Below are positions 3,509-59,201 of a DNA stretch of 64,000 nucleotides, one piece after another (position 1 is the stretch's first letter; each line of letters opens with the position of its first letter). Position numbers and translations under genes: made by a program. The notes beneath the pieces are model-generated. The model was not told the origin of the DNA. It did no database searches and saw only the letters and a program-made list of their open reading frames with translations. Origin of the DNA: Diadema antillarum. Lineage: Eukaryota. The stretch covers positions 1,178,001-1,242,000 of the forward strand of contig NW_027272134.1 in assembly GCF_040938485.1 (NCBI RefSeq). The letters are read 5' to 3'.

Positions 3509-4693
3509 TCAGCATGATGAGGTGTGCACACCAGAGACACTTGTTTCTGTGTTTGACTGTTTAGATCTCGCCTCATTGTCATGTTCAGTTAGCGCTGCTG
3601 CACTCAAAAATCGCCTCAGAAATCTCGAAGGTTCTGGGATCCGATCTAAGTCACAGTGCACCATGCACCCAAAGACGAGCCGAAAGGTGGGATGTTTGAG
3701 GGCATAGATGATTGGATTCAGGCAGCTGTCAAAGACGAGAACCAGCGCAAGGTATGAGGAAACATGCAGAATTAAGCCAGGGGATTTCACAAAAGTCGTA
3801 GCAAAGAGGAGTGCCGTGTATGGCAGGACGCAGAGGAAAAAACCACAGATGACGTAGAGGAGGTTCTTGGTAATTGTGATGTCTAGCCGTGTGGGCTTGT
3901 GCACCTTTTTCTGACCTGGTTCTTTTTTGGCTGTCTCCCCTCCTTCTACCTTAGCTTTTTCCAGCGTTTCCCTCTTCTCTCTGGGAGTGGACGGAGCTTT
4001 GTTTGTGGTTGTCATGGTGTTGCGTACATGCTGCCTCACATGCCTGTATATGAAAAAGTAGCTCGTAACAATGAGGATGAATGATATCATGGCCAGAATG
4101 CCGGCCAGAATCTGGTAGATGTAAGCAGCAGGGTGCATAAAGTCCCATGCACATAGTCGGGAGTTGATGTCATAGCCAAGTTTTCCCTGTCCAGCAGCCT
4201 GTGGCACAACGAGCGTTACTATGGGATACGCCCATGAGAGGATGACCATGGCCGCCACTTTCGGAGCGGTATATATGCGCCTGTAATCCTTCCGAGATCT
4301 TGTGATCAGTATGTAACGGTTGATGGCGATCAACGCCAGGGTCAAGACGCTGCAGCTCACTGCTGTCACAACACTGGAACCGGCAATGGCGCAAATGACG
4401 GGATGCAGTGGCCATCCGCGCTCACCCAGCAAGCCCACTGCTTGAAAAGGCTGGACGATGGAGACCAGAAGGTCCGTCACACTCAGGCTGACGATGAAAA
4501 CGTTCGTGGCTGTCTGGAGCTTTCGGGATAGGAGAACTGCGGCCATCACAAAGAGATTCCCAACTATACCCACAACTCCGATGATGCAATAAAGGGTAGC
4601 CAAAACGGCCCTCTCTGCGTAGTTTGAGATTCCCTGTGATTCCAACCCACTGTTCCATGGGGCTGGAGAGGTACTGAATGACTGAAACTCCAT
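3509..4693 (-). CDS. Class A (rhodopsin-like) GPCR, NRY-type (Moody/Tre1/GPR84/melatonin-receptor-like), 394 aa, single coding exon
   Basis: Seven hydrophobic helices; GN in TM1, LSVTD in TM2, INRY at the end of TM3, LCAWD in ECL2, NPIIY in TM7. The ORF-track start at 4771 is TTG; the first ATG is at 4693, downstream of a strong splice acceptor (ttctttttctttctcag ending at 4784), implying a spliced 5' UTR. Confidence 0.9.
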   Translation of the reverse strand: MEFQSFSTSPAPWNSGLESQGISNYAERAVLATLYCIIGVVGIVGNLFVMAAVLLSRKLQTATNVFIVSLSVTDLLVSIVQPFQAVGLLGERGWPLHPVICAIAGSSVVTAVSCSVLTLALIAINRYILITRSRKDYRRIYTAPKVAAMVILSWAYPIVTLVVPQAAGQGKLGYDINSRLCAWDFMHPAAYIYQILAGILAMISFILIVTSYFFIYRHVRQHVRNTMTTTNKAPSTPREKRETLEKAKVEGGETAKKEPGQKKVHKPTRLDITITKNLLYVICGFFLCVLPYTALLFATTFVKSPGLILHVSSYLALVLVFDSCLNPIIYALKHPTFRLVFGCMVHCDLDRIPEPSRFLRRFLSAAALTEHDNEARSKQSNTETSVSGVHTSSC

Positions 4694-7600
4694 TTTCTTT
4701 GAATAGTAGTCCCTGCAGTCATGTAATCCAGTGCTCCCTACAACAGCAGGATTCACAGTTGAAAATTCCAATGTGATATGAGCCTGAGAAAGAAAAAGAA
4801 TAATGGTATTGATTTAAATGTGCACGTGCATCTGATGTCAGGTAATGTTGGTTAATATGCCCATGATACATGCTACGCTATGCAGTAACTTGTGCAAGAT
4901 TCAACATGACAGTGAATGCCAATTCCGGGTTCACAGATAAGGAGAGATACCATGGAATGATAGACATTTGTCATTCATTGTTTTTGTGGTTAAAAAAAAA
5001 AAAAAACAACGACACCCAGATCCAAGCCCAGCTGTGCATTTCCAGTAATCCATTTTCAGTGTACTTCTTCAAGAACACATCAAGGCACCATTCAGTCATT
5101 TTATTTTCCCTAATCTCAGCTGCTCCCCTTCAACCATGTCACATTGTGCTATTTCTGTTTGCAGGTAAGGTCACATGCACATCCTCAGCCCTGGGACCGT
5201 ACATTGGAGTTTCCTGTGGTAAATGACATCAATCTTAATTTCAAGCACGAATGTCTGTCACTTTCAAGATTCATCTTCGTAGAAAAAAGGGGGATCATGC
5301 AATTCAACAATGATGGCATACACAATAGAAGTTTTTATTTTTTTTAAAAAGTGTTAATGCATAAGTTTTCAGCATCTTTCTGACGCTTGAAGTACAGCAT
5401 TAAGATTTGTTAGTTGAATTTTCTGAATTAGAAAGATATATCCAAACATTGGAATGAAGAAGCCATATGTGATGTGATGCAGAAAAGAAATTCCAATCAA
5501 AATTGCCCTACCTGTGTTTGAGCAGTATGATATGTTAAAATGGAAGTGATGAAAGTAGGGATTTTAAAATTGATATTGGCAATGAAGATGAATCATTGGG
5601 AATCAGTTTAAGTATTTGTGGTTGTTTATCACCAGCTCATTAATAGTCATACATAGTCATTGTGATTAATGTATGGAGGCGGGCGGTTAATGTTACTGGA
5701 AGACTATGATGCCCCTTTTCTTCCCTCCTCCACTTTCAATCTTTTTTTCCCCCTTTTCCCCTTCATGAGTGCGGTTAGGGAGAGAGGAAGTTTTTGCTTA
5801 GAACTTGGCTACTGTTCAGGTGGGGGAAACAGGAAGTAAGCTTGATGGATCCAATCTATTCTTATTTAAGTGATCACATTTAGGATTTGAGTTCAAACTC
5901 ACAGGCATCTGCCTCCTCCACAGCTGACTCCTTCAGCCTTGAAAGTAAGTGAAGGGGGGGGGGGGGGGGAGGGAAGAACCCCCCCCCCAACACACACACA
6001 CAAAACAAACCCAGGGATAGTCTGAGTTGAGATAACAGGCATGTGAGAATGCTACTGAATGTAAGACTACTTCCAACTTAGAGTTGCACCGAAAGTTTTC
6101 GGCATATGAATCGCCTGTAGGCAGGGAGCAGGTCTAGCATTTGCACTTTTGTTGCTAACTGATTATGATAATAATAGTGAATATTTGTAGAGTGCCTTTT
6201 CCACTGGATACAAAGCGCTATGAGATGTCATCTCTGGTTGCCATTCTTTACTTGGAAGTGGCAAGGTTTTGATTCTTATCACATGTTTTGAGTGTACATG
6301 GTGATTTCTACTTCTACTTTAACATTTATCACATTTGACACATGTGCAGGACAAAAACAAATGCTATTCTTGCAGATACAAAGATCATTGTGTGAACACC
6401 GTATGGCCAGCTTAGCCATATTGAATAAGTGCATATGAAAAATTTTTCATTGGACTAGAATTGATTATAATCAGAAACACCTGTCTCTATGATTTTTGCA
6501 TTATTTCATATTAGGATCAGAGAATTTGTTTGAAATTAATTAAAACAAGTTGCCTGAAAATATAGAGTGAGCCCAGGACAACTTTAACAGTGGATTAATA
6601 CCGGTACATTCTTTTGAATGAGAAAAAAAAAAAGGAAGAAAAAGAAAGCAAATGCTTTTGTGCAAGGAATGTGTACTTCAGTTATTTCTTTTTTTGTATG
6701 TGTATATTGAGATAGTGGTTATGATGTAGTTTTCAATGTCAGTAATAGAGTTTCTGTGTGTATGCCCTTAAAATGTCTATTCTGTTAAGCTGTCAAGATT
6801 TGAATGGGTCTGCTCTTTAGAAGCTGTCCCAGAGGTTTCAGACAGGTCTAAAAAAGAAAAACGGGAAAACGTGATTGTAGAAAAATCAGGAACTGGAAAC
6901 AACTACTCCTAGAAAACCTTCTGTGTCCACCCCCTTAAACTAACAATACTCAAGCAGAATTTGCAGAAACTCTCAAACTCAGCAGAATTTGGCAAAGCTT
7001 GAATGCTTTGATGTTAGAAATCCTGTAATATTTGGTTGCGTGACATACAGCTGTGGTAATTTCAAGACTTTTTTTCCCTCTTGAAACTATACAATATTAA
7101 AGGTCACCACTCTGATGGCCAAAAATGACTATTCTAATCGATTGCAACAAAAATGGCTATGATAACCCATTAGCAACCTCCCAGAGCACATTGTCTATAT
7201 TCACAAATGCTGTGAGCTTTTTGCCCAAGGGTTAATACAGTGGCAAAAAAAAAAAAGAAAAAAGGAAAAATGCTTTATGATATCACAATGTTTGCAAGTA
7301 ATCATTGGCCCATTGTAGCAGGATATCATACACTGTATCTGTCATGCAGCAATCACACACTGCACCAACTTACAAAATCAAGTCTCACCTCCCTGTATTG
7401 CTATTCTCAAAATAGATCAAATCAATTAAAACTCTATTAAAGGGTTTTCAAAAATATGCTACAGCCTCTAAAATGGGATACATGTCACTCTCCATCCCCA
7501 AAGTGTTACATAGGAGGATTACTCATCAATATCCGCGCACGTCCTGAGAAGCCAATTAATCATAATGTTTGCTCTAAGAGTTTGCCTAAGCAGTATTAAA

Positions 7601-14800: not shown

Positions 14801-17148
14801 GCTGTGTATGATGAAAGATGTATGCTTTAATAAACAGTGGAGGAACAACATTTTTTTTTTGACATGGCATGTTTAATAGTTCTGCAGTTTACTGCCTGGA
14901 ATTTGAATGAAAAAAAAATTCCTTGTGGAATGTAGTACAGGGAAAGATCTTTTGAGAGGGAAAAAAAATAAAATGCATAATGCCTGTAATATGCAATGTA
15001 TCTATCATGTTAAGACCCAGTCAGTTAACCTGTGATAACATATGACCTTTAAGAATTATCCTGCTACATGAGATGCCAGTAGGAGTTGTGCGTGCCAGCC
15101 CACACTGCAAAGGATGTGCAATGTTTTTGACATGTAATGAATCCTTGATTGACATCCGATAGTGATGAAAGTACTTCTTGGCTCCTGCATCAATGTTTAA
15201 GGATACTCTATGGCCAGTAGAAACAGAGTCCTCTTCTGTGTTAGAGTGTCAGCTATCAGGAAAATGAGCAACTTTCTTCATATATTTCAGCATTTGGCCA
15301 TTAATGTTACTCATAATGAGTTCAAAATTAAGGAGCAATCATTGTGTACCAGTGAGTATGTCATTTATAGGTCCTTTGATATAACAGCATGATATGTGTC
15401 AGCCATTCAGTGGCAGTTAATTCCAAGTGACTCGCATTAGTGCCTGTGGCAGATGTTTCCTCTACTCTATCTGCTGTGTGTTGTAGTAGGCCTACTCTTT
15501 TGTCAACAAATGTAACCTTCAATGATTGTGCATGTGAATAGTGCCTTTGATCATCAGGCATGTAGCAAAATTGATTCTAAACCAAATTCTTTGACTATTC
15601 AAGATGTAAGTGGACAGTTAGTATAGATCTACTCTTTGAAACTTTCAGACTGGCCTTGTTTGCAAACCATTATATGTGGTCATAGGCAGAATTTATCATC
15701 TTCTTATTGTTTGAAGTGATGGCTTGTATGGTTGATATTTCACCTCATTCAATCATGTAGTATTTCATTGAAGTAGGCCCTACTGAATTAGACTTTGATT
15801 AGAACTGAGAGTCACTGGAAAATTCTTATAGCATTCAAAATCAATGGAAGAAATCATCACCATCATCTGTTTTCTTTTCTCTCATGGGTGCTGTAGAAAT
15901 AGTGCGCTAAAATCTTACACAGGCAAATCAATACCATCTTACACTTTTGTAGGACTTACAAAGGCTCTTAACTCTTTATTTGCCATGGTGGAAACCCCCA
16001 GTGTGCCACGTTATTCTGAGACATGAATGTAGTCATGCTTTGAGAAAGAATTCTGCTTTCCTAATCTATATACCTTCTACAAATTTCTGTTAAGCTGGAC
16101 ATATAGTGAGCAAAGTTGAAGAGGAATGCCAAGCTTTGCTTTGATATAAATGGTACGACAGATCTGTTTTTAGTTTTTCTTTTGAATGACCAGTTGCTAC
16201 ATAACTGTAAAGGCATGGCTTTTGCACATAAAACTGTGACAGAAACTCAAAATTTACACGCAAATCTAATTAGTTGGGAACACCGCTTGATAGTCAATCA
16301 CATATAGATTGCAAGCTGTACGTGAGAGGAACAAAAGCGCGAGAAACACTTTCATTGTACTGCTGCATAAGGCAATTTATCGATCGGTTTGGGCGGCTTT
16401 GTGCGTTTGAGCAAAATATGCGAAGTTGGCATGCCGTCGATTGAGTTGGACGTGCGAACGTGGCACATAAAGAGTTAAAGAGCCACTACCTTTTACTACA
16501 TGTAGGCCTATATTTGAAAGAAGAAAAAGATGATTTAAGATTAGAGGGAATTAGAATTGACAGATCTCCTGTACCCCACAAGCGAATATAAGATATATTT
16601 CTACCCTCTCTCTGACCTCAAATATCAAAATGCCTCACTCTATAAGAGTTTACTGTCTTGAAGATTTGTAGCCTTTGCTTGTGTATGTGTGTGAGTGTGT
16701 GTGGTGTGGTTTCATTGTCATACTCCTTTTGCTTTGAATATCAGGTTTGTCACTACTATTAAAATGATAATGTAGAAAAGAAATCCCCCTCTCCAAACAC
16801 ACACAAGTATGAGTTATACCTGAATATGTTTAGCTCATGGCAGCAGAAGAGAAGCAGAAACATGCTTCAGACAGTGTACTGATCAGACATCTGGTTCACA
16901 ACCCACAATCATTAAAATCAACCAGACGCTGAAAATGCTCAGTCAGATGTGCTTTCCTGTGGCAGAGTGTGTCATCGTGTGTTTATGCCACAGTTTATTT
17001 CAGGACTAATAGACTCTAACCCACACAAGGGAGGTTCACACGGCAGTTTTTGAGTGAGACTTGGATCGCTTTCTATGTACATTGATGTTTGGATCGTAAT
17101 CAAAATCTCACTAATGTGGTGTGTGAATGCCTGGCAGTCGAAGTAATT

Positions 17149-19500
17149 AGGTGATCCGAGTATCCTCTCGGATCACCTTCTGTATCTGTACTGATTCTTT
17201 ATTCTTCTTTCTTTATTTCTTTATTTCTCCGCAAAAGTTGTGCAAGAGTTAGCTCAGAAAGTGCATTGCCTATCAATGTCAAACTTATACCATATATGTA
17301 TCATGTCCCAAAGACGACAGATCAAGTGAAATCATAGTAATCAGTCGACCGTGACGTCACTATGACGTCATTATATGAAAACACATTTTCATGCATATCT
17401 CATTAATGGAATGGAATTTTTCAATGAAATTTACGTCACATATACTTCAAGTCAAGCGGGTTCTACTCATGTTCTCAAAATTCATATTTATCTTAAAACG
17501 CGCGCGTACGCGCGCGTTGACATATTTGTATGCTCAAATCGAGCTCAAATTTTTTTTGCATACGTTTCAGATCATTTGGAGCATTTTTTGAAAAATTGAA
17601 AAAATTGGACGGACGCGTACGCGCGCGCACATATTCGCACGCACAGCTTATATGCAATAGAAATTTTCAGTTTTTTCACACGGATCGGATGTCCAAAATG
17701 TCAAGGAATATTTCTACCAAGTTTCAAGTCAATCTGACTCAATATGACGTCATACGGGCACGTCAAACTCAAAATTCCGCGCGTGCGTCAATGGGGATAC
17801 GCAGTGCAACTATGCCAAAAAACCGTCAATTTTAAATCGGATTTAACTCGTCAGGATGAACGGTGACCCCCCTTTTTCTTGGCATATTCTGAAAGCTGAT
17901 GAGTTGTTCATGTTATTTCATGGGCTGGCTATGCTGACAAAATGATTAAAAGATATCAAATTTCTTAATAAAGTAAAAAAAGTAAATTTTCAAAATGACG
18001 TCATCAAATTTCAAGTTTAATCGAGCGTATCTCACTTATCCTTTGCCAATTTTCACCCAAATTTCAATATAATGTAGCTTATTTAATCATCTTTCAGTCA
18101 TATAATTACAAAATTTTGATTGGATGACGGCATCACTTCGTAAAAATGGATTGAAAGTAACCTTGTCAAATTTGACCAGTTTACGTGTAATCTCTATGGG
18201 AGTGCAATTTTTATGGAAATGAAAATTGACATGACTATCTTCATCGAGCACTAGCTCACTTATGCTTCGGTGAATTTCTCCAAGATTTTAATATGTTGTA
18301 GCTGGGACTTTGGGCTATCGTAAGTGTGCCCTTCGTTTTTTCATACGATGTCGGGATCACGTCAAAAAACTTGCTTGAAATTAAAGCTTATCTTCGATAT
18401 ATTGAAATATTTCTTTCTTTCTGCAACTTTCTGTGCAATAACTCAAGAAAAACACGCCCTATCACTTCCATATTTTGCACATGTTTAGTTCATGTCACGT
18501 GAATTATTTCATAAAATAACAACTACTTGATCGGACACCATCTTGGGTATGTAAATTAGGGTCAAAGGTCATAAGTGTTTCACCCTGTATCTTAGTGAAT
18601 ACATGTCCTATCTTTCCCATATTTTGCACACGTAAGGACTATGTTACAAGGATCATTACACAAAATAACTACTTTTTACTCAGATGCCATCTTGGGTGTG
18701 CAAATTGAGGTCAAAGGTCATATGTACTTCTTTTTGTATCTTCGTTATGACGTGTTATCTCTATGGGAGGGTTTTTTTTATGTGAAAATTGACATGATTG
18801 TCTTTATCGAGCACTAGCTCACTTACCTTTCAGTGAATTTCTCCCAGATTTTAATATGTTGTAGCTGAGACTTTGCGCTATCGTTTTCATACCTTCGTTT
18901 TTTCATACAATGTCGGGATTACGATAAAAATCTTGGTTGAAATTAAAGCTTATCTTCTATGTATTGAGATATTTCTTTCTTTCTGCAACTTTCTTTGCAA
19001 TAACTCAAGAAAAACACGCCCTATCACCCCCATATTTTGCACATGTTTAGTTCATGTCTCGTACATTATTTCATAAAATAACAACTACTAGATCGGACAA
19101 CATCTTGGGTGTGTAAATTAGGGTCAAAGGTCATAAATGTTTCATCCTGTATCTTAGTGAATACCTGTCCTATCTTTCCCATATTTTTCACACGTATAGA
19201 CGATGTCGCGAGAATCATTTCACAAAATAACCACTATTTCATCAGATGCAATCTTGGGAGTGCAAAGGTGGGTCAAAGGTCATATGTACTTGTTGCTGTT
19301 TTTTCGTTATAGTGTATACAGAATTTTGTACCTAACATGGCAGATATGACTCCCTTTGCTAAATGAGAATGCAAACATCACACGGCCAATGTCTCTAAAC
19401 ACAGATGAAACTTGTATGGTCATGCCTATTGCGATCAGGACTCGAATCATTGATAAAAAAAAAAATCGGATCACCTTAATTTGTCAGTGATGACAAATTA
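17149..19500 (+). mobile_element. Helentron-type non-autonomous element (HINE/DINE-1-like), about 2.35 kb
   Basis: 5' sub-TIR AGGTGATCCGAG (17149-17160) is paired with an adjacent inverted copy (17167-17178), followed by a CT-rich tract. The 3' sub-TIR TCGGATCACCT (19466-19476) is followed by the stem-loop TAATTTGTCA-GTGA-TGACAAATTA (19477-19500). Internal tandem duplication; no ORF. Confidence 0.7.
18190..19310. repeat. Two diverged tandem copies of an approximately 565-bp unit inside the HINE-like element
   Basis: Anchor ATCTCTATGGGA at 18190 and 18757; repeated CATCTTGGG...GGTCAAAGGTCAT subunits within each copy. Confidence 0.8.
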
Positions 19501-43902: not shown

Positions 43903-44640
43903 CTACTCTGAGCTGTAAGGATTCAAAGTTTTTGGCTACAATTTTAGGGTTATCTGACGGGGAAAGTGATGGACGCATTCTCCCAAAAACCAACTTTCTT
44001 CCATTTACTCATGGCTTTTGGAGTAGTCTATGATATAATAATGGTAATGATTTTGTTAATGAAAGTGATAATATGATGAGGATGATGTTGATAGTGATTA
44101 AAATAATGCTAAAGCTAATTATATAGTTGATTATGATGATTCCATGATTGATGTAGACATTTTGTAGTAAAGATGACTCCAGGACTTGATGAAACAGAAT
44201 GATGTTGGCTCTACTTCAAAGTTACGGACTTTTAGCAGCACTCAGCGAGGTTTAAAATATTTTTCCATTATGCAGCATTTCACAGTTTGTAGATTATATT
44301 TAGTATATACTGTGTAAGCAGTTTTGCTAAATTTTTTCCTTTTTTTCTCTCCAAAAGTGAGGGATGGGTTAAAAATCTTGGGAGGTTGGAGAGTATATGT
44401 GTGGAATGCTAAAATTGAAATCATAGAAAGCAATGTGCAGTCATCATGGTATCCGGAGAATTATTTGATTTGATCAGATTAACCCCCCCCCCCCCCCTTA
44501 ATATTTTCTGTTTGAATGTAGTGAAGAGATGTAGGGTCATGATGACGACTAAAATCTGATGGATGTAGCCTATATATTTCTACCAGCAGCTGTCTGATCC
44601 CCCCACCCCCATGTAAGTTTAGGTCTGGGTTATGTTTGAT

Positions 44641-44672
44641 CAAGGAGCTTCAAACACATGGAGATACAACGC
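44641..44672 (+). repeat. Left terminal inverted repeat CAAGGAGCTTCAAACACATGGAGATACAACGC
   Basis: Exact reverse complement of 58818-58849. Confidence 0.97.
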
Positions 44673-44785
44673 TCACTTTCCTTTAGAAGTAAGCTGTGAT
44701 GCCGCCGTCGTAAAACAGTGGGTGGTTGACCCTTATCTAATCTACTGGAATGTCACTCTGACCGCAATTCGAAAGCCCCGCGGAA

Positions 44786-44873
44786 AAATACGTCATCGGA
44801 AGTCAACGCTCTCGCAATGCATTGTGGACAAATACGTCATCGGAAGTCAACGTTCTCGCAATGCATTGTGGAC
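44786..44873 (+). promoter_or_regulatory. Subterminal 44-bp direct repeat x2 upstream of the PHD gene, containing ACGTCA (CRE half-site) and CGGAAGT (ETS-type) motifs
   Basis: AAATACGTCATCGGAAGTCAACG(C/T)TCTCGCAATGCATTGTGGAC twice with 1 mismatch, in a CpG-rich segment about 140 bp upstream of the ATG at 45010. The regulatory role is inferred. Confidence 0.6.
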
Positions 44874-45009: not shown

Positions 45010-45262
45010 ATGACTTCGTCTTCACTGACACTGGATGATAGAGACGTGATATGTATTTGTTCCATCCCCAAAACATCTAATCTCATATCCTGTTCTAATG
45101 TTTCGTGTACAATCGGTATTTACCACTCCGAATGTGTTGGACTGCAGCTGCACGGGCACGGGAGTGCTGGAAAATCGGATTGGTTTTGCGAGTTATGCGA
45201 TGCCGATGAGACAGACGACGTATTGGAAGGGGATGTTGAACTTAATTCGGAAACTAAAAAAG
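45010..45262 (+). CDS. Exon 1 of accessory gene (PHD finger and acidic stretch)
   Basis: CIC-x10-C-x4-C-x5-H-x2-C-x15-WFCELC; ATG in aaaATG context; donor AAG|GTACCG. Confidence 0.85.
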
Positions 45263-47633
45263 GTACCGTTGAATTCATTGTTCTTACTGAGTGATATCAT
45301 TACAAAAAAAAAAAAAAAAAATTGATAGGTACAGTCAGTGTCAGCATATGCAGCTGCAGGAGGTGGTGGTCTGGATGATCGCTGAGCAAGTTTTTTTTTG
45401 AACACTGAAAGTTGGATCATTTGAGCTGTAGACTTTACAATACGAAAACCAAGGAGCTTCAAACACACTGTTTGAAGCTCCTTGAAATCCCTGTCTGCCA
45501 CAGATAATATTTTCTGATAATTGATAGTACTTCAGAGAGGTATTAAATAGTAGCCAGTTAATACTTGATTTATAATAGACCTACCACGTCACTAATATTA
45601 ATGATAATCATTTCCATTTGAAAAAAAAATAATAATAATGTGTCTCCAAAAGAAATAGTTACACTTACAATAATACAAATTAATGGTTACAGTAATCAAA
45701 TAACAGTCGTGATGCAATGCTGATTAAAAATAAAAATGATAAGTAATTTACCAATGATAAAAATAATTTAAGCGATAGTCATAAGGATACTGCAGTTACT
45801 GCTGCTGCTAACAAGAAATATGATGGGGGGGGGGGGTTGGTGTCGGGCTTGTATTCAGGGAAAATTTGATATCCGAGTATGTCATTGCAGAATCATTGCT
45901 ACAGTACATGGCATGAACAAGTCTTAAAATGAAAATCCCATAATTTTTATTGTCAATAATGATCTACCTACAGCGTACTAGTAGTGTATTTGACTACTAG
46001 TAATAGTATGTCGAAGTGGCTTTGCACCCTCAGCCTGATTTTGTTTAGGAGCTGACGGAGGGCTCTTGAGAAAAATTAATAAAATGACAAAAATTCTCTT
46101 TCCTTTTCTCTATAGTTATACTTGCTGCTTTGTGCTTGTATGTTTTATTTGCATGTATCAAAATATTAATAGGTCCAATAGGAATCAAGCTGATTACCTC
46201 TTCTTTAATCCTCATCTTCAGATGACCATATGGAACAATCATATGAACAGCATGAACCAGGATCTTCGTCTGATCAACAACCGAAACTGCCTAAGCAACA
46301 ACAGAAGGTGATTCCATGTAAGTACAAGTGTATACCCAAAATTGGGTCCAATTCTGGTCATTTAAGGAAGAGCAATTTGATGAATTTTAAAATCAAAAGG
46401 CATACATGTAGTTCTTAAATGTAACATTGAAAAAAAAATTGAGGAAAAAATAGAAATGACTGGTACTTCACAAATTTAGTTGGTGAATTTAAAAGTACAT
46501 GTATATGAGGTTTCATTCTTTTTTTCCCCCATTTCAATCTAATTTCTCTTTCATCAACAACGTAAACTATATATGTACATTTCTTAATGAAGAAAATTTT
46601 TAAAGCCTGTTGTCCTTTTTCTTTTCTAGTGCACGGCTCCAAGGTCGTTAAGAGTGTCATGGAAGCAGGGTACGACATCTATAAGGAAGCACTTGAAAGG
46701 GCACAAAAGGATGATCATTTAAAAAACTACCCTACAGGCCGAGAAGTCATTAGAGTTTGTGAACTTTTGTTAAAGTCCCCGACCGATGAGAGCAGGAAAT
46801 CAGCCCTTGGACTTGTTGAGAGCGTACATACTTGTGCATGTGCTGGTGATGCATTTCCTGTTGGACCAGCAGCCAACGAGAAAATTTGCAGTGCCTTTCA
46901 CCGCCTTCGAACGCAGACATCTCTACAACATACCTGGCAGACACTTCTTCTTCAGAGCAACATAACATCCTCACCCCAAACTTCACATCTTTCACTTCAG
47001 TATATACTGCGCCAACTTCTTCACATCATCACACACCGGAGACTCATTCAGCCCGATGAAATCCAGACTGATGACTCAGCAAATCTCACAGAGCATGATG
47101 AAAATGTCTTGAGATATGTGGCTGGCTACATCCCTTTCGCATTAAGTAAAAGATACACCAAGACAAACTCCAAATTCTACAGGACTTTACAATCTTGGAG
47201 GGGTTCAGATGAAGACATTGTTGCAGATACATTTCTTGAGTACACATGTACTTGGACGAATCTTGTTAATAGAGGGGGGCTTTTCCGTGTTAAGGACAAT
47301 GTTTACATGCTGTTCCGGGCCATGGAAATTCAAACAAAAAGAACACTTAATATGAATCTTGCTCAATCTCCTGACCTTGGAGGCTTGTTGACCAAAGCTT
47401 TACTGCAAAGTGAACATGTTCTACATTGTTGGACCTCCCTCATTGAAGATTTGACTGAAAGTGAAGCACAAACATTGCTGCTTACTGTTGTAAGATACTG
47501 GGTAAAGATCAGGGTTAATGCCTTTGTACGAGTGTTTCTAAATCTACGCAAAGAGGAACAAGCAAAGAAAAAAAGGAGTAAGAAAATAGCACGCAAAGGA
47601 GAAAAGAGTTTAAGGAAAACTCTTCAGAAGTAA
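45010..47633 (+). CDS. Transposon accessory gene: PHD finger + acidic linker + P-transposase C-terminal-like domain, 450 aa; exons 45010-45262, 46222-46317, 46630-47633
   Basis: Canonical GT-AG introns with matching phases (1 and 1); 253+96+1004=1353 nt with no internal stop. C4HC3 PHD in exon 1; YVAGY, RGGL and KIRV motifs in exon 3. Confidence 0.85.
45450..45484. repeat. 35-bp TIR-to-TIR hairpin (putative excision footprint)
   Basis: CAAGGAGCTTCAAACA-CAC-TGTTTGAAGCTCCTTG = first 16 nt of the TIR and its reverse complement; flanks are not duplicated. Confidence 0.85.
46222..46317 (+). CDS. Exon 2 of accessory gene (Q/E/S-rich linker)
   Basis: Acceptor ctcatcttcag, donor T|GTAAGT; phase-compatible with exons 1 and 3. 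Confidence 0.75.
46630..47633 (+). CDS. Exon 3 of accessory gene (P-transposase C-terminal-like domain)
   Basis: Acceptor ccttttcttttctag; long ORF with ENVLRYVAGY, WTNLVNRGGL, YWVKIRV and a basic tail. Confidence 0.88.
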
Positions 47634-48986
47634 TGAGCGAATCATTTGTGACAATCAGCAACATTGTCCTTAATTTCTACCGGTAGTATAATCTGGGATC
47701 ATTGATGTCAAAAAAACAAAAAATTTTTCAGTTATACAGTTTGAAGTACAACTTTGGTCAACATTCATTCCTAAAATTAAGAACAGATGGAGAGGAGAGC
47801 AATTGTCCATGTATAACAACTGATGAAGCTAAATGCTGTAATGCTGTGATTATTCATGGAATCTTTATTAATGGTGCCTGTCAGTATTGTACGTTGTAAC
47901 ATTGTACATCCATCCTTCAGCAAGCTTTGTATTTGGCAATACACATATTAACAGAAAAGAAGTTTGTTAATGTATACATTAAAAACAGCTAGCACAATGA
48001 AATAGATCCCTAAGTGTTCATTGATTAACCATTCTGGTCACTTCATCTACAGGTCCATTCTTTGCTAGAATACGAGTTTCATAAATTGCTATGTTGGGCA
48101 AGCTGCTGCATTATATCGCTTTGAATTGAGTTAAGTGCCTAACCAACGGAGAAAAATGAAGGGTCGTTTGTACCCATGTGCACATGAGATATCCCCGATC
48201 TGGCTTGGTCCGTACGCTGATACCACCCAGCAGTTACCTGGCAACAGGGTGAATGCACCTGCAATAATGTTGTATTTGCATAGTGTGTTATTGTACAGTG
48301 AACGAGGAGTCTCTCTATTTCTCTCTCTCCTGTTCTTTCTCACCATCTTTCATAATCGCTGCCCCCTTCTTCTTTGTTTTTCTTTCTTAGCATCACCTGC
48401 GTTCCTGTCCGTGTATGTTTTGTTGTGTAACTGTTTTTGTTGTGTAAAATTAGGTTGTCTTGTTGTAAAAACTCTTAATTTATTTATCTTTGTATGAGGC
48501 CCCAATATCAAGTTCGGCTTACTGGGGATCCTCCTGTATGGTACCTTGACTTTTTTGTTTGTTATCATTATGTGTTCGTTCTTTATCACTATGATTTGAT
48601 TACCTGTCATGTGCAAAATCAGCCATAAATTATTATAAATCATGTGTTTACATCTGAAAGTGATCAGAGTTGATTATGTTGTACCATGCAGAAACAATAA
48701 AATGAAATGAAATGAAATGAAATAGTGTTATAGCTTACAATGTTATATAAATTATCTACAAACGAAACAGAATATGACCACTAAAATAATGATGATAATG
48801 ATGATAACAGCTCTGATAAAGATGCATCAATTTTAGATGTAACAAAGATATATTTGACAGCTTGTCCAGTCACAATGCAGGTCTCAAGTAACAGCTTTGC
48901 AGTTGTATTGCTAGACCTTGCCAGTATGTACTAAATGTTGACAAGATACATTTTCATTTTGCAAGTGAAAATTGCCATAGATAATA

Positions 48987-49168
48987 CAGTGCACTCCCGT
49001 TATAACGAACACGGTTATAATATTCCGGTCATAACGAAGTAAAAATTTGGGCTGCAATGTCATCCACTGCATGTATTTCTATTGTTTATTTTCGGTTATA
49101 ATGAAATTCCGATAATAACGAAAGAAAACTGCCGGTCCCGAGGACTTCGTTATAACGGGAGTCCACTG
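48987..49168. mobile_element. 182-bp Tc1/mariner(pogo)-type MITE nested in the P-like element
   Basis: 23-bp TIR CAGTG(C/G)ACTCCCGTTATAACGAA with TA on both sides. Confidence 0.8.
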
Positions 49169-50096
49169 TACTTAAAAAAAAAAATACTTGAAAAAAAAAA
49201 TTCTTAAACCTCCTTCAGACACGATTTGCAATTATCACACAGGTAGCTAAATAGACAGTGACATGAATGTGTAAGCTGATATAATTCGAAGACAAAGTAA
49301 ATGCATCTTTATCAGCAAATTTTGCACCATTCCTGTTCATCTGGAAAAAATAAATAAAATGTGCACATGGTGATGTCAGGACTGTACAGTGTTTATATTG
49401 ATCATGATTTTTTTTTTTTTTTGGTATGAAAGTTACATTGACAGAGCAAGAAGCAACATTCAAGTTGTTATTTATGATATGAAATCAATTATGAAATATA
49501 CAAATGCATAGCATATCACGACCTTTATTTGCTCTCGACAAGGAGCCTGAATAATGGAGAGAAAGAGAGAGAGAGAGAGAAAGAAAGGAAGAGGAGGGAA
49601 TGAGGGCTAGAGAAAAAGTATCAAAATGACAGGACATGAAATTAAAAGAGAAAAATTAGCATTTTCTTTCCCAACAAAAAGTAACAAGTAATCAGGGTCG
49701 GCGAAAAAACATAGCGTGTTTTGACACATGTTTTAAAACATGTCTTAAAACACCTTTTTTTTTTAGCAAAAAAAAAAAAAAAAATGTTTCGAAACACCCC
49801 ATTGACACATCTACTAAACATATGTTTGTCTATGTGAATTGTAATTTTCATTTTTTCAAATGCTTTTCTCCTGACCAGTGCATGAACATAAATCCAAAGA
49901 AAGTAGGAAATCTCTATCTTCTCCTGTATATCTCCCCTCTTTCTTTCTTTCTCTCTCCCTGTACCTCTCTCTCTCTTCCTCTCTCTCTTCTGCCTTTCTA
50001 GCTCTATCACTGACTCTCTTTTGCTCTTTCTCTTATATTCTCTATCTCTCCCCCTCCCACCTCTTTAACATTAGTTCTTCTCACATAAAACCATAC

Positions 50097-50119
50097 CAAG
50101 GAGATTCAGAAGCTCCTTG
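50097..50119. repeat. Excision footprint with perfect 7-bp TSD ACCATAC
   Basis: ACCATAC-[CAAGGAGATTCA GAAGCTCCTTG]-ACCATAC. Confidence 0.85.
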
Positions 50120-51013
50120 ACCATACTAATATTCATATGAAATGTGATACAGTGTATGATTATTTTACAACTCTAGATCCCTGTAACACCTCCTCAATCA
50201 TGATGAAAAGCAGCACAAGTCAATTTTTTTTGGTGATAAATTTGTTACTTTAATAGCATGCAACGCGATATTTCATGACCGTATACCCAGATATGCAATT
50301 CGAGAGTCATGCAACATTTAACAAGTGCATATCAAGCCCCAAATTTAAAACAAACAAAACAAACCCAAAAAAAAAAAAGAGCTTTCACCTACAAATCCAA
50401 TGCAATTTCTGTTGTTAGTCAGAATTCATAAAGAATTATTTTCTTGGAGTAAAAATAAAAATTATAGATTTGTTGTTGATCGAAAAAGCGTTACTGACGA
50501 TTACCTTTAAAACAACACTAATAAAAGTTGAAAACAAATAAATACAGCTGTATACAGTATGAGAAAGTTATTTAAAAAATAAAATACTTGAGAGCAAGTG
50601 GTGGCCCCGCCCCGCCCATGTTTACTTGCATTCAGACTGCAATGTATTGTGTACAGTTTTGTTAGGTTTCTTGCGTGGAGAACTTACACAAATCTGTACA
50701 TGAGGGACCAAGGAGCTTAGCTTGGTGATCATACACACGAGTCAATTTTCATCCATTTCATCTAAGTCAATATAGTAAAATATGAAGTGAGAACATTCAG
50801 GATAGGGATTTCAACATCTTTGAATTCTGTGAAGGGGCATAGATCCAGTGATATTGGCCTCATAAATGAACTGTAAGTACATGAACATTGCACATTCAGT
50901 GCAGCAGTTGTAGCTGTTTATTCAGCACTAACAGCGGTGCAATGGGTCTCTAGTTAGCCGGAGCTAGCGGGGCAGGGTGCTAGGTATAGGACTAAGGAGC
51001 AATAAGGTGACAG

Positions 51014-52088: not shown

Positions 52089-52375
52089 TCATCGCTTTCT
52101 CTTTCTACTCTGCAAAGGAGTAGAATCCACAGCAGTTTTTCGTTTTTGTGACTTCACATTAGCTTTTGCTGAGACTGCAATGCTTGAACCTGCTACATGC
52201 AGTGGCAGAATGTTTGAGCCAAACTGATGAACATCAGGGTTGTCAAACCGTCCTCCAACTCCTCGCTGACGACTGAAGTACTCTTCCAAAGGATCTTGGC
52301 TGAATTTTTCTGAAAGAACAAACTCCACACCATCCTCCAAGAGAAGCTCCTTGGCAAGTTGAACAAATGAGCGCA
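52089..52375 (-). CDS. Transposase exon 6 (catalytic Glu, SQDPLE; basic C-terminal tail RKRKR)
   Basis: Acceptor ttaataccacag; phase 1 restores VRSFVQLAKELL. Confidence 0.9.
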
Positions 52376-55300
52376 CTGTGGTATTAACAAGACACACACA
52401 CAAAAAAAAAATGTGAAAACACTCTGAAAGAAATGTTTATGGCAAAATAAAAGGGAAGAAAGAGCATATGATCATGGATGTTGTATTGACTAAGAGTAAT
52501 AAACCTGTAAAAAAAAAAAAAAAAAAACACAAAGTACAAAATATCTTGATAAGTTCATGCAATGAGCTTCTTTTTTAAGTTCCTTGGTTCATGCATGAAA
52601 GATAATACAAATCAATATACAAACCATGAAAAATCTCCAGAATTTAAATAACCACGCGAATATTAAGTGCAGGTAGAGAAGAAATGGGAATAAAACAAAA
52701 CATGTGAGTTCTTTATTGCACCTAACATTAGAAAAATGCAATGTCTCTTATCCATACTTTTTCCTTTTCTTTTCATTTTTTTATGAAATAAGGAATAAAC
52801 AAGAAATAGGAAATCATGTTTAGAACGTACATGTATTATAGTACATTTGCATGCATGTGTGTGTGTGTGTGTGTGTGTGTGCGTGCGTGTGTGTGTTTGC
52901 ATTCAAATTTGTCTGTTCTTGAAGATAATGTTCTTATTTTGTTCTAAATTGAACATGGAATTTGTATCAATACTAGTAGTTAAAAGTAGTTCTGAGAATG
53001 TCTGCGCTAATGTGGCAATGTGCATGTGCTATGTCTATGGTGCAATATAGGTAGCCATCTCTGTCAACCTACCCTGAGACAAACACTCTCCCAGGCCCAT
53101 CCCACCTCCATTGAACAAAACCTACAGCCAGTCGGGCACGCACAAACAAGCTCCGCCCACTTGGCCTGTCACTAAAATATTAAAGCAGCGATTGGTTGAC
53201 CAAGGAGTTCTGGCTTGACATGGATAAAGTATGGATGTGCTGTGTGTATGGATAAAGTATATGGATCGATGTGCTGTGTGTATACATGTATACATGTGTA
53301 TGTATTCGACATGCGTGCAGAGCGGTGCATGCTTACCTGCAGCGGGCCAGGGACGGGGTTCTTCGACATGCCGATTTTTTTGTTCTCTAAATGTAATGAG
53401 AATGCCAGACAAATCTTCTTCGGCTCAAGTGATGTAAACTACGTGTATTATGTACAAAAGGGACTGAATGTTTTACTTCGACACAGCCGAAATTCGACTC
53501 TCGTACTTCGGCTTATCCAAATATTTCTTAGAGAAAACACATAGGGAAAAATCGGGACTTCTTATTTTGCTTCGAGTTAAGTGATTTTCGACTCACTCGA
53601 CGTCGACTTATCCGAGGTTTACTGTACGTTATAATCACCTGTTAATCTCAGGCCATCAAGAGTTGCTTTACTGAGACACAGCTTCTGGCGATCAGCTGCC
53701 TTAAGACCGGGGACAAGCATGCCTTCAGACTCCCACTCATCCAGTAAGCCAAGGAAGTCTTCCTCTAGCCACTAAAAGGAAATAAATTAGAAGGAAATCA
53801 GATTATTAGGAATTAACACAGTCTGAAGCTCCTTGATAATACTCATATTAAAAAAAAAAATAATAATTTATGCAAAAGCCTTTCCCCCTTATTTAAAAAA
53901 GGGGGGGGGGGTGCAGCAGAAATTTTTCTTGTAGCTTAATGTTGGCCTAATGGAACACTGAGGTCTAGTTTCATCTGCTGAGGTCAATTAAAATGTGTAC
54001 TTGCACATGTATACCAGACTCCCTTTTGTCTTGAAGGGTTAACAACAAATGTGTCTAAATCTCCCAATTTTAACTTCTTCATTGTTCATCTACAAGTACA
54101 TCACAACATACCACAGAGCTTAAAACTGTTTTAAGCTCCTTGAACATACCAACAATCTCCAGTCATCCACAGATTTGTAAGGGGCAAGAGCTGGATTTCG
54201 GGATTTGATGTGCTGGGAGATGTTCGACACATTCATGCAGTCAAAGAACTGGTTGAAATATTCTATGAATGTGATGGTGCTGGATGTCTCCAATGGTTTA
54301 CTGCTTTGCTGTTGTTGCATCTTCAGAGCACTAGCCATAGATGTGCTGAGAACCTGTAAATAGAAAAAAAAGTTCAGATACATTCATGAACATTCCACTA
54401 TTTCTACAGACCCTGTGTGAAACAATTGGTGTGGGGTGTATGTGTGCAGGTGTATGTGTTTTGATATCGATTATCTAAAGATAAGAGTCTTACATGTACT
54501 ATTAATGGTAGATTATTTGAACCAAGGAGCTTAATTGTAGATTATCTGAACCAAGGAGCTTAAAACAGACGACTACTGTTTGAACATAAATGCATGTTCT
54601 ATAATTGAATACTTTGGAAAAATAAAAAAGCACTCAAAATAAAGCTATGATTTCACATAAATAGGACAAAAACACAGAAATCAATGAAATTAGATTACAT
54701 GCACAATTTAAGTTATTATAAGTACACATATTTTTAAATGCTTCAAGAGAAAACTAATCCACATTAACAAGGAGCTTGTTTGAAACTCCTTGACATTTCT
54801 GAATTTTGCTATTAACCCATAGAGGTACATGGCTTTGCACGGGTATAAATCAATCAGCTTTTTTACTTGAAATCCAATTTTGATGAGATTTTCAGCATTA
54901 TGCTTTTTTTATTTTTTTATTTTTTTATTCAAATCAACTTTTTGCTGGGGTGGACTTCCCCTTTAAGAGAAACTGCAAAAGTGTCTCCTCTGTGGGTTAA
55001 TGGATGTAGTGACAACCTTGCTTTGCTGCTATATGATGTTTACAGCAATTACATAATATTCTTACCTGTGCAGCAAGGGAAACTCGCATGCGTGATGAAG
55101 GAGTCAGGTTAAGATGTTCTGCGGTGATTTTGTTGAGCATTCGCAGTCCTTGTGCTGTACCATCTGGATTGATGTGCCCAGTGTCCCAAGCGTTGACATC
55201 AAGGATATGTCTCCAGGAAATTGGAGCACCTCTAAGCTACAGAGAATAACAAGTAATATTTAGAATTACCATCAAATGATCTTACACAAGAAACATAATG

Positions 55301-58300
55301 CTACACTAACAGAAATTGTCAAAGGAAATGATTTAGCACTATAATTAAGGACTAATAAGAGGCTACTTGGTGAATTGAAGTCTGAAACATTTTTTTTTTA
55401 TAAAAAACAAACAAACATATATATATGAAAAAAAAACAAACATATATATATGATATACAAGAATTCTTAAATCTACATGAATATCAAAAGTAAGAAATGT
55501 AAGACCAAGAAGTACTTTAGAGACATTACCTACGTGTACGTGATAATCTGAATAACTTTTCTACTGACACAGCATCATTACTATTTTGTACTTAGAGGAT
55601 GAATCAATTCGATAATTCCAAAACTATTTACCATCATATTTCTGGTGTTGTTATGGCTGCCAGAGTTTTCGAAGTTGTTTCTTGTTGTTTTGATCAGGTG
55701 AGGGACATCAGAGATAAAATATATCTTGTGGTCAGGGTTGAAGGGGTTTATTGTGAAGTGCTCTGAACTGCACAATTTGTAGAATTTCCTGTTTGTGGTG
55801 GCCCCATCTGACACAAATGCACGAACATGGAATCCTGCAAAATGCAGTCGCTCCACCCCCTCCCAGATAATGTGGTACAACTGATCGGCTGTCATGGCAT
55901 CACATGGAAAAAAACCAACTGGAGTGTGAAGATTATGAAAGATCCCTCGGATCATGATGGTAAGTGCATGTGTTGCAATGTTCTGCGTAGTGTTGTCTTC
56001 TGCCTCTTTTCGATACTTCAAAAGTTCATTGTTAATGTCTCCAAGGTCTGTAAATCCGACCAGTTTACCTCTTGACGTGTAGACAAGGCCTGATTTCACC
56101 TTCATTTCATCAAAGACGACCGATACATTTTTCTGATGGGGTGGCAGAGACTCAATGTTTATGTCCTTCGCAATCTTGGAAAGGAAGTCTGAAGAGTATC
56201 CAGGGTTGATGTCAAAGCAGTGTGTGTAGTTGAAGAGTGTGTTTTTATGGGGAAGGTGGAGATACCCGGAAGACCGAAGAAGGTCATATGCAGCAGGGCT
56301 TTTGGAGTGAATTGCAATGCAGAGGCGGAGAATTGAAGGATGCCAACGCATCTGGCGGGGTGGCTTTGTGAAAAACTTCTGTTGTTCCTCCCACAGAAGC
56401 TTTGCAGGTGACCCTTCTGGGAAGTCGGCATTGTGGGCTTGAAAAATATCCTTGAATGACTTGCTCACTTTCTTATCGATGATTTCCCCTTCCTTTCGGA
56501 TCATCTTGTGCAAGGACTTGCGTAGCCGCACTAAGTTCTCCCCCATGGCCTTCCTTTCCTTACTCATTTTTTCCAAGCGATTACGCATCTCCGTTTTTGA
56601 CAAGTGAGCATGTGGCTTGAAGCTTGACGTACTCGCTGTTTCTTTCTCCTTCTTTAACCTTTTGCGAAGAATGCCAAGATCCGTCCTGTAGATGGTACAG
56701 GTACCGCACCGTCCAACATCACCTTTGAGGATGGGGCAACTGTTGTGTCTCAATGACACATTCAGAGAGTCATATTTACTCGGATGATGGTATACAGGAC
56801 GGTTCATAACATCTTCTGGGCTAATATCACCAAAGTCTTCATTGCCTGGGCAGACATGTGACTTCATGATTGCTTCTAAAAACTCTAGAATCTGCGATGG
56901 AGACAAATTGGGCGGAAAATCTTTGAGAATGTCAATTCCCGGATCTATTACCTTGCCATAGTGGCGAACCCTCCAACTTCCGTCACAATTAATGATGCAG
57001 CATTTCTCCGACATGCCTTCATCATCCAACTCGACAATGATCACCTTCCCCTCTCTCTGATTGAACACCATCTTTCCTTGGAGCACATCCTGCGCATTCA
57101 TCACTGCATCTAGAATGCCACCATCTTCCTCTTCATGCGAAACACAATATTTGCAGTCCGGTGCATGAGGCTCAAAATCAGGAACAACAATGCTGATACT
57201 TGCAGTTTGCCTCTTTCGTTGCTTCTCACGCCATCTCGATAACTTCTTCGAGCAAAGCCCACAAACCGAAGGAGGATGAATATCATCAATGTCGAGAGAA
57301 ACATCGATGTCAAGAGCCCTTTTGATAACAGCAGACCATGTTGACTTTGCTTGGTGTCGCTTATTTGGCAATGTGATACCATCGCTACCACACAATCTAC
57401 AGATGTCCTGAAGTTTTTCCTTGTGTCTGTCCTTGTCGTCTAAAAAAACAATAATAACAATAACAACAACGATAATAATAACAGTAATAATAATTTTAAA
57501 AAAATAATTCTATAATAATTCGGTGATACTTAATCACATCAGTTTTCTAAAGCTCTATGAAGCTGAATATAATGTACACAACAAAATCACATATATTTGT
57601 TTTAAAAAAATCTTTTATGTGTCATGTTGTTTAATAGTATTTTATAAATTCACATGATAAAGTAAACCTAATATAATAAGAAAAATAACTGAATGAAATG
57701 AACATATAAAATTTCACATTTACACTTTGGTCACTATTCAATTATTTTTCAATAATCTAAAGCAAAACAAGCAACAAAATACTGGTTCAAGTGAAACATG
57801 ATGTAGCTCACAGGATATTGACTGAAATTATGCATGGGATCAGCGCACGGGATAGCCATTAAATTTACAAAGTTAGAGCGTCGATTCGGGTAAACATGCA
57901 GTCATTTGTACATCCACAAGAAGATTAAGATCGAGAACCTTGTCGGACTACAGTACGCCTGCTTGTACTTTGTTTTTAATGTTCTGAATGGAAGCTATGA
58001 ACATGTAAATTCCAGACCATGCGCCACATAGGCAGGCTGGAGGATTCAACTACCGATGTCATCTCAGTGACACTTTTGTACAGTCCCATATATAAGACTT
58101 TGAGTGATAAAAAAAGCTACTTTTAAATAGACGCTACGTAAACATCACACCAAAATGACTCACAAATATCACTTCTTCAACGATTATTTTCAATTGCAAC
58201 AACATAAAACATGAAAAAAATGTATGACCTACGGATAATTTTCCATAACTCGAGGAATACGAAACACAAGAGTGGAAAAAAAAGCTGAAAATCTCGGCCA

Positions 58301-58817: not shown

Positions 58818-58849
58818 GCGTTGTATCTCCATGTGTTTGAAGCTCCTTG
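58818..58849 (-). repeat. Right terminal inverted repeat (32 bp)
   Basis: GCGTTGTATCTCCATGTGTTTGAAGCTCCTTG followed by TSD GTTTGAT. Confidence 0.97.
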
Positions 58850-59201
58850 GTTTGATGTGATTGATGGAGAGTGTGCTGGTAATCTGTCAAGGAGGGAACA
58901 CAAATCCTCACAGATGGGATCAGATCCAGTTTGACTTGATTGATGTGCACATCCAGGGGTTTGGGAGATTTTGTTCTTATTGGCCATATCTTCCATCACC
59001 CTGTCAGAGTTAGTATGCCTCCCTCCACCTATCCAGTCTCAGATCAGTTTGCAGAGAGGGGTCATTGAACACTTTCAAGCTCCATTAGTCATCACTTCTG
59101 CACCTTATTTTTTTTTTCCAGCTCATCTCTGAGAAGCGAAGGTATGAATACAGATGCCCACTATTTTCGTTGAATACCTGTGATGTTGGGATGATCTTTA
59201 A

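Follow-up and report, generated by a model that had tools for sequence, protein, structure and literature searches.

The transposases of P elements and THAP9 are regarded as single proteins. In the P-element transposase, the C-terminal domain (CTD) is wholly alpha-helical, and a disordered, flexible linker connects it to the RNase H domain (PMC7776569). In the strand-transfer complex, this CTD touches both transposon and target DNA; a basic helix reaches out toward the target, as does a tail that is basic and unmodelled (PMC7776569). Here we describe a mobile element in a 64,000-nucleotide stretch of the Diadema antillarum genome (contig NW_027272134.1, positions 1,178,001 to 1,242,000 of the forward strand; hereafter the window) whose P-type transposase lacks a CTD and whose second gene encodes a homologue of that domain. 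We consider it likely that this second gene, called the accessory gene below, encodes the detached CTD subunit of a split P-superfamily transposase. A split at this point is structurally plausible, because the linker is flexible and disordered in the P element.

Both genes lie within one element that has the ends of a P-superfamily transposon. Target-site duplications of this superfamily are 7-8 bp long in the Repbase classification. The 14,209-bp element enclosing the accessory gene agrees with this, as it combines 32-bp terminal inverted repeats (TIRs) with a 7-bp duplication, GTTTGAT. Its parts, in window coordinates, are as follows.

44634-44640 and 58850-58856, flanks of the element: 7-bp target-site duplication GTTTGAT, read directly
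44641-44672, plus strand: left TIR, 32 nt, arms 100% complementary; homology to a second copy starts exactly at 44641
45010-45262, plus strand: accessory exon 1, with the start codon and an ING-type PHD finger in an open 84-codon frame
46222-46317, plus strand: accessory exon 2, a 32-codon polar linker holding ATG 46230, the start in NCBI model P0001
46630-47054, plus strand: accessory exon 3, first part, an all-helical middle domain of about 141 aa, family-specific
47055-47633, plus strand: accessory exon 3, second part, the P/THAP9 transposase CTD homologue, with the motifs RYVAGY, NRGGLF and KIR, a long helix and a tail, both basic, and the stop codon
47547-47630, plus strand: the basic tail, within the second part of exon 3
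52092-57443, minus strand: partner transposase P0156, 868 aa, five exons mapped by tblastn, convergent with the accessory gene
58818-58849, minus strand: right TIR, 32 nt, arms 100% complementary

The partner transposase has a P-type core and no CTD. Pfam recognizes the TNP-like RNaseH_N, GBD and RNaseH_C domains in P0156, the last at residues 797-825 (PF21787, E 1.4e-25; PF21788, E 1.2e-17; PF21789, E 0.0025), and phmmer aligns the protein to 6p5a_A over P residues 135-555 (E 3.9e-23), placing the core of the element in the P superfamily. The protein ends 40 aa past this alignment, and the Pfam scan finds no Tnp_P_element_C. P0157 from Strongylocentrotus and P0158 from Diadema end in the same way, without a CTD by Pfam. 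As judged from domain content, the domain missing from P0156 is exactly the one that the accessory gene supplies: instead of following RNase H at the C-terminus of the transposase, the CTD is encoded by a separate convergent gene. The two genes being exons of a single gene is ruled out, as they lie on opposite strands, tail to tail. The preliminary description of this locus, made from the sequence alone, had proposed that the CTD became a separate subunit. Its separate gene and the CTD-less transposase support this, with subunit function inferred; the ancestor may have been fused and have lost the CTD, or the P/THAP9 line may have gained it by fusion.

Sequence comparison places the C-terminal part of the accessory protein with the P transposase CTD. 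The motifs ENVLRYVAGYIPFAL, TWTNLVNRGGLFRV, RAME and YWVKIRV, which the preliminary description had matched to the P transposase, are all found in the 450-aa product, and its last 45 residues hold 17 K/R against 3 D/E. A family profile searched against 1.84 billion representatives recovered 4759 cluster representatives at E <= 0.001, so the family cannot be put down to chance; the best 150 matches are 171-535 aa long, none of them of transposase length. When 139 relatives were scanned singly, Tnp_P_element_C appeared below threshold in 17, by far the commonest Pfam match; zinc-finger families aside, no other Pfam family occurred in more than 2 members. The best of these sub-threshold PF12596 matches had an E-value of 0.0019 (cutoff 22.6 bits), and precomputed THAP9_C (PF22824) matches are present on some family members. 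Searches of the PDB sharpened with profile depth. A first small profile (A1) did not list the P transposase among its matches, which appeared with deeper profiles: a 139-sequence profile (A2) placed 6p5a_B at the top (E 0.037), and a profile of the C-terminal core (A3, 136 sequences) found it as the best of 177,635 PDB sequences (E 0.001). The chain 6p5a_B is Drosophila P transposase residues 617-734, deposited as a chain of its own. Its alignment to A3 runs through three collinear segments, YIAGY, GGL and the KIR helix, which reproduce the YxAGY/GGL/KIR motif series of the CTD.

Predicted structure gives the same answer. We built fold models with AlphaFold2 without templates; the AlphaFold2 weights are older than the 2019 release of 6P5A. 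All-helical in both cases, the models have mean pLDDT values of 90.9 (exon 3) and 90.2 (core). Among 48,161 PDB chains compared by VIA-align, 6p5a_B came out on top, with Z 10.2 and an rmsd of 2.9 Å over 114 of its 118 residues (150-309 in the model), and was the sole match with Z >= 8, the runner-up scoring 7.0. Foldseek of the core model against the PDB also returned 6p5a_B first (probability 1.00, TM by target 0.66), and against Swiss-Prot models Drosophila P transposase residues 605-750 ranked first. In the ESM Atlas, the top five rows, at TM by query 0.66-0.53, were clusters of THAP9_C or of P/THAP9 transposases, with later rows at or below 0.38. These searches find the all-alpha CTD fold, and the P CTD was the best match in every library searched at the domain level. 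Matches of the whole protein and of the core to Integrator, Tra1 and HEAT proteins in a protein-language-model atlas were discarded as helical-repeat noise. By profile and by modelled fold, then, the last ~185 aa of the accessory protein are homologous to the Drosophila P transposase CTD, which upholds the central proposal of the preliminary description.

The element has moved recently. A second copy (L007), on another Diadema contig, is 99.3-99.6% identical, with all three accessory exons identical; homology between the two begins exactly at the TIR, and the flank differs. Near-identity, a boundary at the TIR and a different flank together argue for recent transposition. Between window positions 52830-54050 and L007 positions 16595-17531, the copies differ by indels in the transposase introns, with ~0.8 kb present in the window only and ~0.5 kb in L007 only.

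Pairing of the two genes is conserved far beyond Diadema. An accessory gene on the plus strand followed by a P-like transposase on the minus strand was found at seven of seven loci examined, the window included, in four phyla. The loci other than the window are as follows.

L001, Lytechinus variegatus: 37-nt TIRs round both genes and a 7-bp duplication, CTAAGAC
L002, Diadema antillarum, a second family: ~31-33% identity to the window's pair
L003, Branchiostoma belcheri: accessory gene (plus), then P-like transposase (minus)
L004, Exaiptasia diaphana: last transposase exon only, by tblastn
L005, Ptychodera flava: accessory gene (plus), then P-like transposase (minus)
L006, Amphiura filiformis: accessory gene (plus), then P-like transposase (minus)

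Starfish, sea cucumbers and a crinoid have named relatives of the accessory protein as well. No fused form, that is, a transposase-length protein with this CTD, turned up in a word-limited search with the CTD of the relative P0005, whose 42 matches were all 294-535 aa long; because the search was word-limited, this absence is weak evidence. In Lytechinus variegatus, the element of orthologous type (L001 9798-22269) lies within one intron of a large host gene with DUF4502 and DUF4503.

The accessory gene has three exons, as the preliminary description had read it. Exons 45010-45262, 46222-46317 and 46630-47633 on the plus strand splice in frame to 1353 nt, or 450 codons and a stop, across canonical GT-AG borders (AAG|GTACCG...CTTCAG| and CAT|GTAAGT...TTCTAG|). 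The 46317/46630 junction is used by the 363-aa NCBI model P0001 (Diadema antillarum), which starts at ATG 46230 in the same frame as exon 1 and is 100% identical to the exon-3 product. The exon 1-2 junction finds its support in relatives. P0004 (518 aa), the homologue from Lytechinus variegatus, shows the order PHD, linker, C-terminal domain and was re-spliced exactly from exons of 427, 120 and 1010 nt, which correspond to 253, 96 and 1004 nt in Diadema; both introns are phase 1 in both species, and P0004 exon 1 matches window 45043-45261 by tblastn (E 4e-10). A PHD finger with the same C-terminal domain occurs in seven further relatives (P0005, P0015, P0016, P0025, P0040, P0044 and P0051), one of which is a Diadema paralogue annotated in this form. 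An exact-protein look-up of P0005 and P0157 gave no record. We accept the exon 1-2 junction because of its canonical sites and frame, the Lytechinus gene structure and the PHD-CTD combination in seven relatives, which make good, if indirect, support at the level of sequence.

The N-terminal head of the Diadema protein is an ING-type PHD finger with an altered cage. Exon 1 holds all eight zinc ligands of a C4HC3 finger (residues 15-63, nt 45052-45198) with ING spacing. On its own, the exon-1 product matches the ING1 PHD best (E 8.6e-6), with ING/Yng proteins making up nearly all following matches, and a profile of nine family PHDs found only ING (ING1-5), Yng (Yng1/2), Pho23 and Png2 among its top 20 PDB matches, down to E 5e-19. 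Pfam PHD reaches E 0.0049 on exon 1, under its gathering score. In ING fingers, as ING2-H3K4me3 structures show, two aromatics cage trimethyl-lysine: a Tyr that precedes the first Cys, and the WFH motif's Trp. Across the eight other family PHDs aligned, the Trp is retained in all eight and Tyr/Phe in only two; in the Diadema finger both positions are Ile, and the aromatic cage is absent. Since both cage positions are Ile, H3K4me3 reading is doubtful, or altered, in this Diadema copy as judged from its residues, while histone reading is plausible for the family as a whole. The histone-reader module of the preliminary description stands as an ING-type finger, but the reading itself does not carry over safely to this copy.

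Heads vary within the family. Echinoderm members carry an ING-type PHD, a lone C2H2 finger takes its place in those from amphioxus, acorn worm and anemone, and others have no finger detected. A regular-expression search of the N-terminus found no PHD or C2H2 pattern in the second Diadema family (L002) or in the Amphiura protein.

A helical domain separates the PHD finger from the CTD. The preliminary description had the two fused; both ends are present, but a ~145-aa domain that it did not describe intervenes. This separate domain, exon-3 residues 1 to ~141, is conserved in the family. Structure matches to P/THAP9 span exon-3 residues ~142-326 only and stop short of it. Pfam gives no family for it, and for exon-3 residues 1-146 the other structural matches score Z 7 or less, with no recognised relative.

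These features suggest how the two proteins might work together. The transposase gene ends just past its RNase H domain, the CTD being made from the second, convergent gene of the same TIR-bounded element. The accessory protein would then join the transposase to complete the transpososome, probably with two of each, and its CTD would supply the basic helix that faces target DNA; we hold this 2 + 2 assembly and the target-facing role to be somewhat more probable than not. It is possible, at a little under even chances, that the middle helical domain stands in for the covalent linker as a docking surface on the transposase. More tentatively still, the N-terminal head could anchor the complex at certain chromatin or DNA, or bias it toward them, much as the RAG2 PHD does for RAG1, and for the Ile-cage Diadema copy we would put this lower. 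The split would also give two-key control, since a CTD-less transposase would be inert or repressor-like. The roles that the accessory protein would have in target choice and regulation, both raised in the preliminary description, are inferences of this kind.

Several observations weigh against a detached CTD subunit. The exon-3 product alone matches no Pfam family at E <= 1 and does not reach the gathering score of PF12596 or PF22824, identity to the Drosophila CTD is only 16-19%, and whole-model Foldseek against the PDB returned only noise, the match being confined to the domain level; whole-model Foldseek against Swiss-Prot gave weak P and THAP9 matches only. The Exaiptasia locus is partial evidence of pairing. 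Homology, the split, co-location, mobility and conserved pairing are observed; assembly, requirement and targeting are predictions. Modest sequence E-values, and the middling structural scores that helical folds often yield, could be taken to mean that an unrelated host gene or captured fragment sits in the element and resembles the P CTD through convergent helical packing. We regard this as very improbable: four independent libraries and methods all put the P CTD first, the conserved motifs align in the same order, the partner transposase lacks exactly this domain, and the two genes are adjacent at seven of seven loci in four phyla. A better case can be made that the accessory protein regulates or inhibits transposition, its free CTD titrating transposon ends or holding the transposase on chromatin, much like the truncated repressors that the P element makes in Drosophila. 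Regulatory proteins that are truncated are known from P elements (PMC7776569), the modules at the N-terminus belong to chromatin- or DNA-binding types, and an active part of the accessory protein in transposition is a prediction. Yet at every locus with a readable transposase C-terminus the partner has no CTD of its own, and the P-element CTD contacts donor as well as target DNA in the strand-transfer complex (PMC7776569). Pairing is also kept in mobile elements across phyla, and the Diadema element transposed recently; need is therefore favoured over restraint, and we judge a regulator unlikely.

In Diadema, the mature product might lack the PHD exon. The real protein would then be the 363-aa form, with exon 1 alternative, decaying or unused. 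NCBI model P0001 starts in exon 2 and leaves the PHD exon out, and three Diadema RNA runs gave contigs over exon-3 parts only, with no read joint across 45262/46222. The cage residues are degenerate and Pfam PHD stays under its gathering threshold; many relatives are 300-360 aa long and may have no N-terminal module, which would make it dispensable. Against this, exon 1 is open for 84 codons with eight of eight zinc ligands, canonical splice sites and the correct phase, its three-exon, phase-1/phase-1 structure is shared with Lytechinus, its sequence is identical in the second copy L007, and a Diadema paralogue is annotated with PHD and CTD. We give the shorter product about one chance in several and retain the three-exon protein. 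Splicing of the PHD exon to exon 3, as the preliminary description had it, is thus backed by homologous PHD exons spliced to CTD exons in relatives but not by a Diadema RNA joint. That description named two findings as decisive against it, no likeness to the P CTD and an unspliced PHD exon; we looked for both, and neither overturns its reading. Detachment of the CTD as a transposase subunit remains the explanation that we prefer.

The element carries further repeats, and its transposase a RAG1-type N-terminal match. Short copies and hairpins of its TIR (CAAGGAGCTT...) lie inside introns and intergenic space at 45447-45491, 50094-50126, 52550-52591, 53813-53842, 54120-54149 and 54549-54570, one of them a back-to-back TIR pair in accessory gene intron 1; footprints or nested miniature derivatives are possible origins. 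Two tandem 44-bp units (44782-44869), 95% identical, separate the left TIR from the start codon of the accessory gene. The 19-nt core that they share has no further occurrence on either strand of the window, and the repeat was found at the left end only. The units could be subterminal binding sites or promoter elements. A 25-nt inverted repeat between the two genes (48985-49009 / 49146-49170; 96% complementary, arms 136 nt apart) may be an unrelated miniature element. P0156 gives no THAP domain match, and its N-terminus (57144-57443, minus strand) matches RAG1_imp_bd and RAG1 NZD. According to PMC4411706 and a 2026 preprint, RAG1/RAG1L and Chapaev transposases are the only proteins known to have the Chapa/NZD domain, and its apparent presence on a P-type core looks unreported. 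Outside the element, a run of N at ~43700-43950, an assembly gap or mask, lies just upstream, and two intronless ORFs of rhodopsin-family GPCRs flank the region as ordinary host genes (3509-4771, minus strand, 7tm_1 E 2e-46; 37918-38997, plus strand, 7tm_1 E 2e-33).

In this element the P transposase is naturally divided at the linker that is disordered in the cryo-EM structure, implying that the CTD can work in trans. A literature search, with Repbase outside its scope, found no account of a P transposase split in two or of the accessory family, and no naming source takes its members beyond 'uncharacterized' or a generic domain label, although at 4759 cluster representatives the family is large. 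With a domain that faces target DNA in the P structure, and with interchangeable reader or zinc-finger heads on it, the family amounts to a natural experiment on how cut-and-paste transposases come by a target or chromatin preference, and it could serve as a template for retargetable ones. In its widest form, which we offer as speculation and think less likely than not, the proposal is of an ancient and widespread P-superfamily lineage in cnidarians, echinoderms, hemichordates and cephalochordates with an obligatory two-part transposase and an exchangeable ING-PHD or C2H2 head that directs integration to certain chromatin or DNA; taken with the RAG1-NZD-like domain of the catalytic subunit, it would be an independent RAG1/RAG2-like solution on another core.

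Compared with its nearest known relatives, the Diadema system combines familiar parts in a distinct layout. With the P/THAP9 CTD (6P5A chain B; PF12596, PF22824), the accessory protein shares a helical fold over 114 of 118 residues, the collinear YxAGY/GGL/KIR motifs, and a long basic C-terminal helix and tail. It differs in that a convergent gene makes the CTD as part of another polypeptide, behind a PHD finger and a ~145-aa helical domain, and in reaching no Pfam threshold. Its finger resembles those of the ING family (ING1-5, Yng1/2, Pho23), the H3K4me3 readers that are its best PDB matches, in a C4HC3 spacing that starts CxC, but has Ile at both the Tyr and Trp cage positions and a longer loop before the last Cys pair. 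Like the Diadema element, PIF/Harbinger elements encode a second protein with a DNA- or chromatin-binding module, there a Myb-like DNA-binding protein, that is presumed to be needed beside the transposase. In Harbinger this protein is not a detached transposase domain; in Diadema it appears to be one. RAG1/RAG2 and ProtoRAG-type transposons share with it a convergent two-gene layout within TIRs, a PHD on the accessory protein and a RAG1 NZD-like domain at the N-terminus of the transposase. Unlike these, it has neither a Transib-type core nor a kelch accessory: its core is P-type, an RNase H fold interrupted by a GTP-binding domain, its target duplication is 7 bp long, and its accessory is all-helical, without a kelch match in Pfam, and probably a piece of the transposase itself. 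A RAG1/RAG2-parallel layout on a P-type core bears on how RAG architecture could arise by module shuffling among marine-invertebrate transposons.

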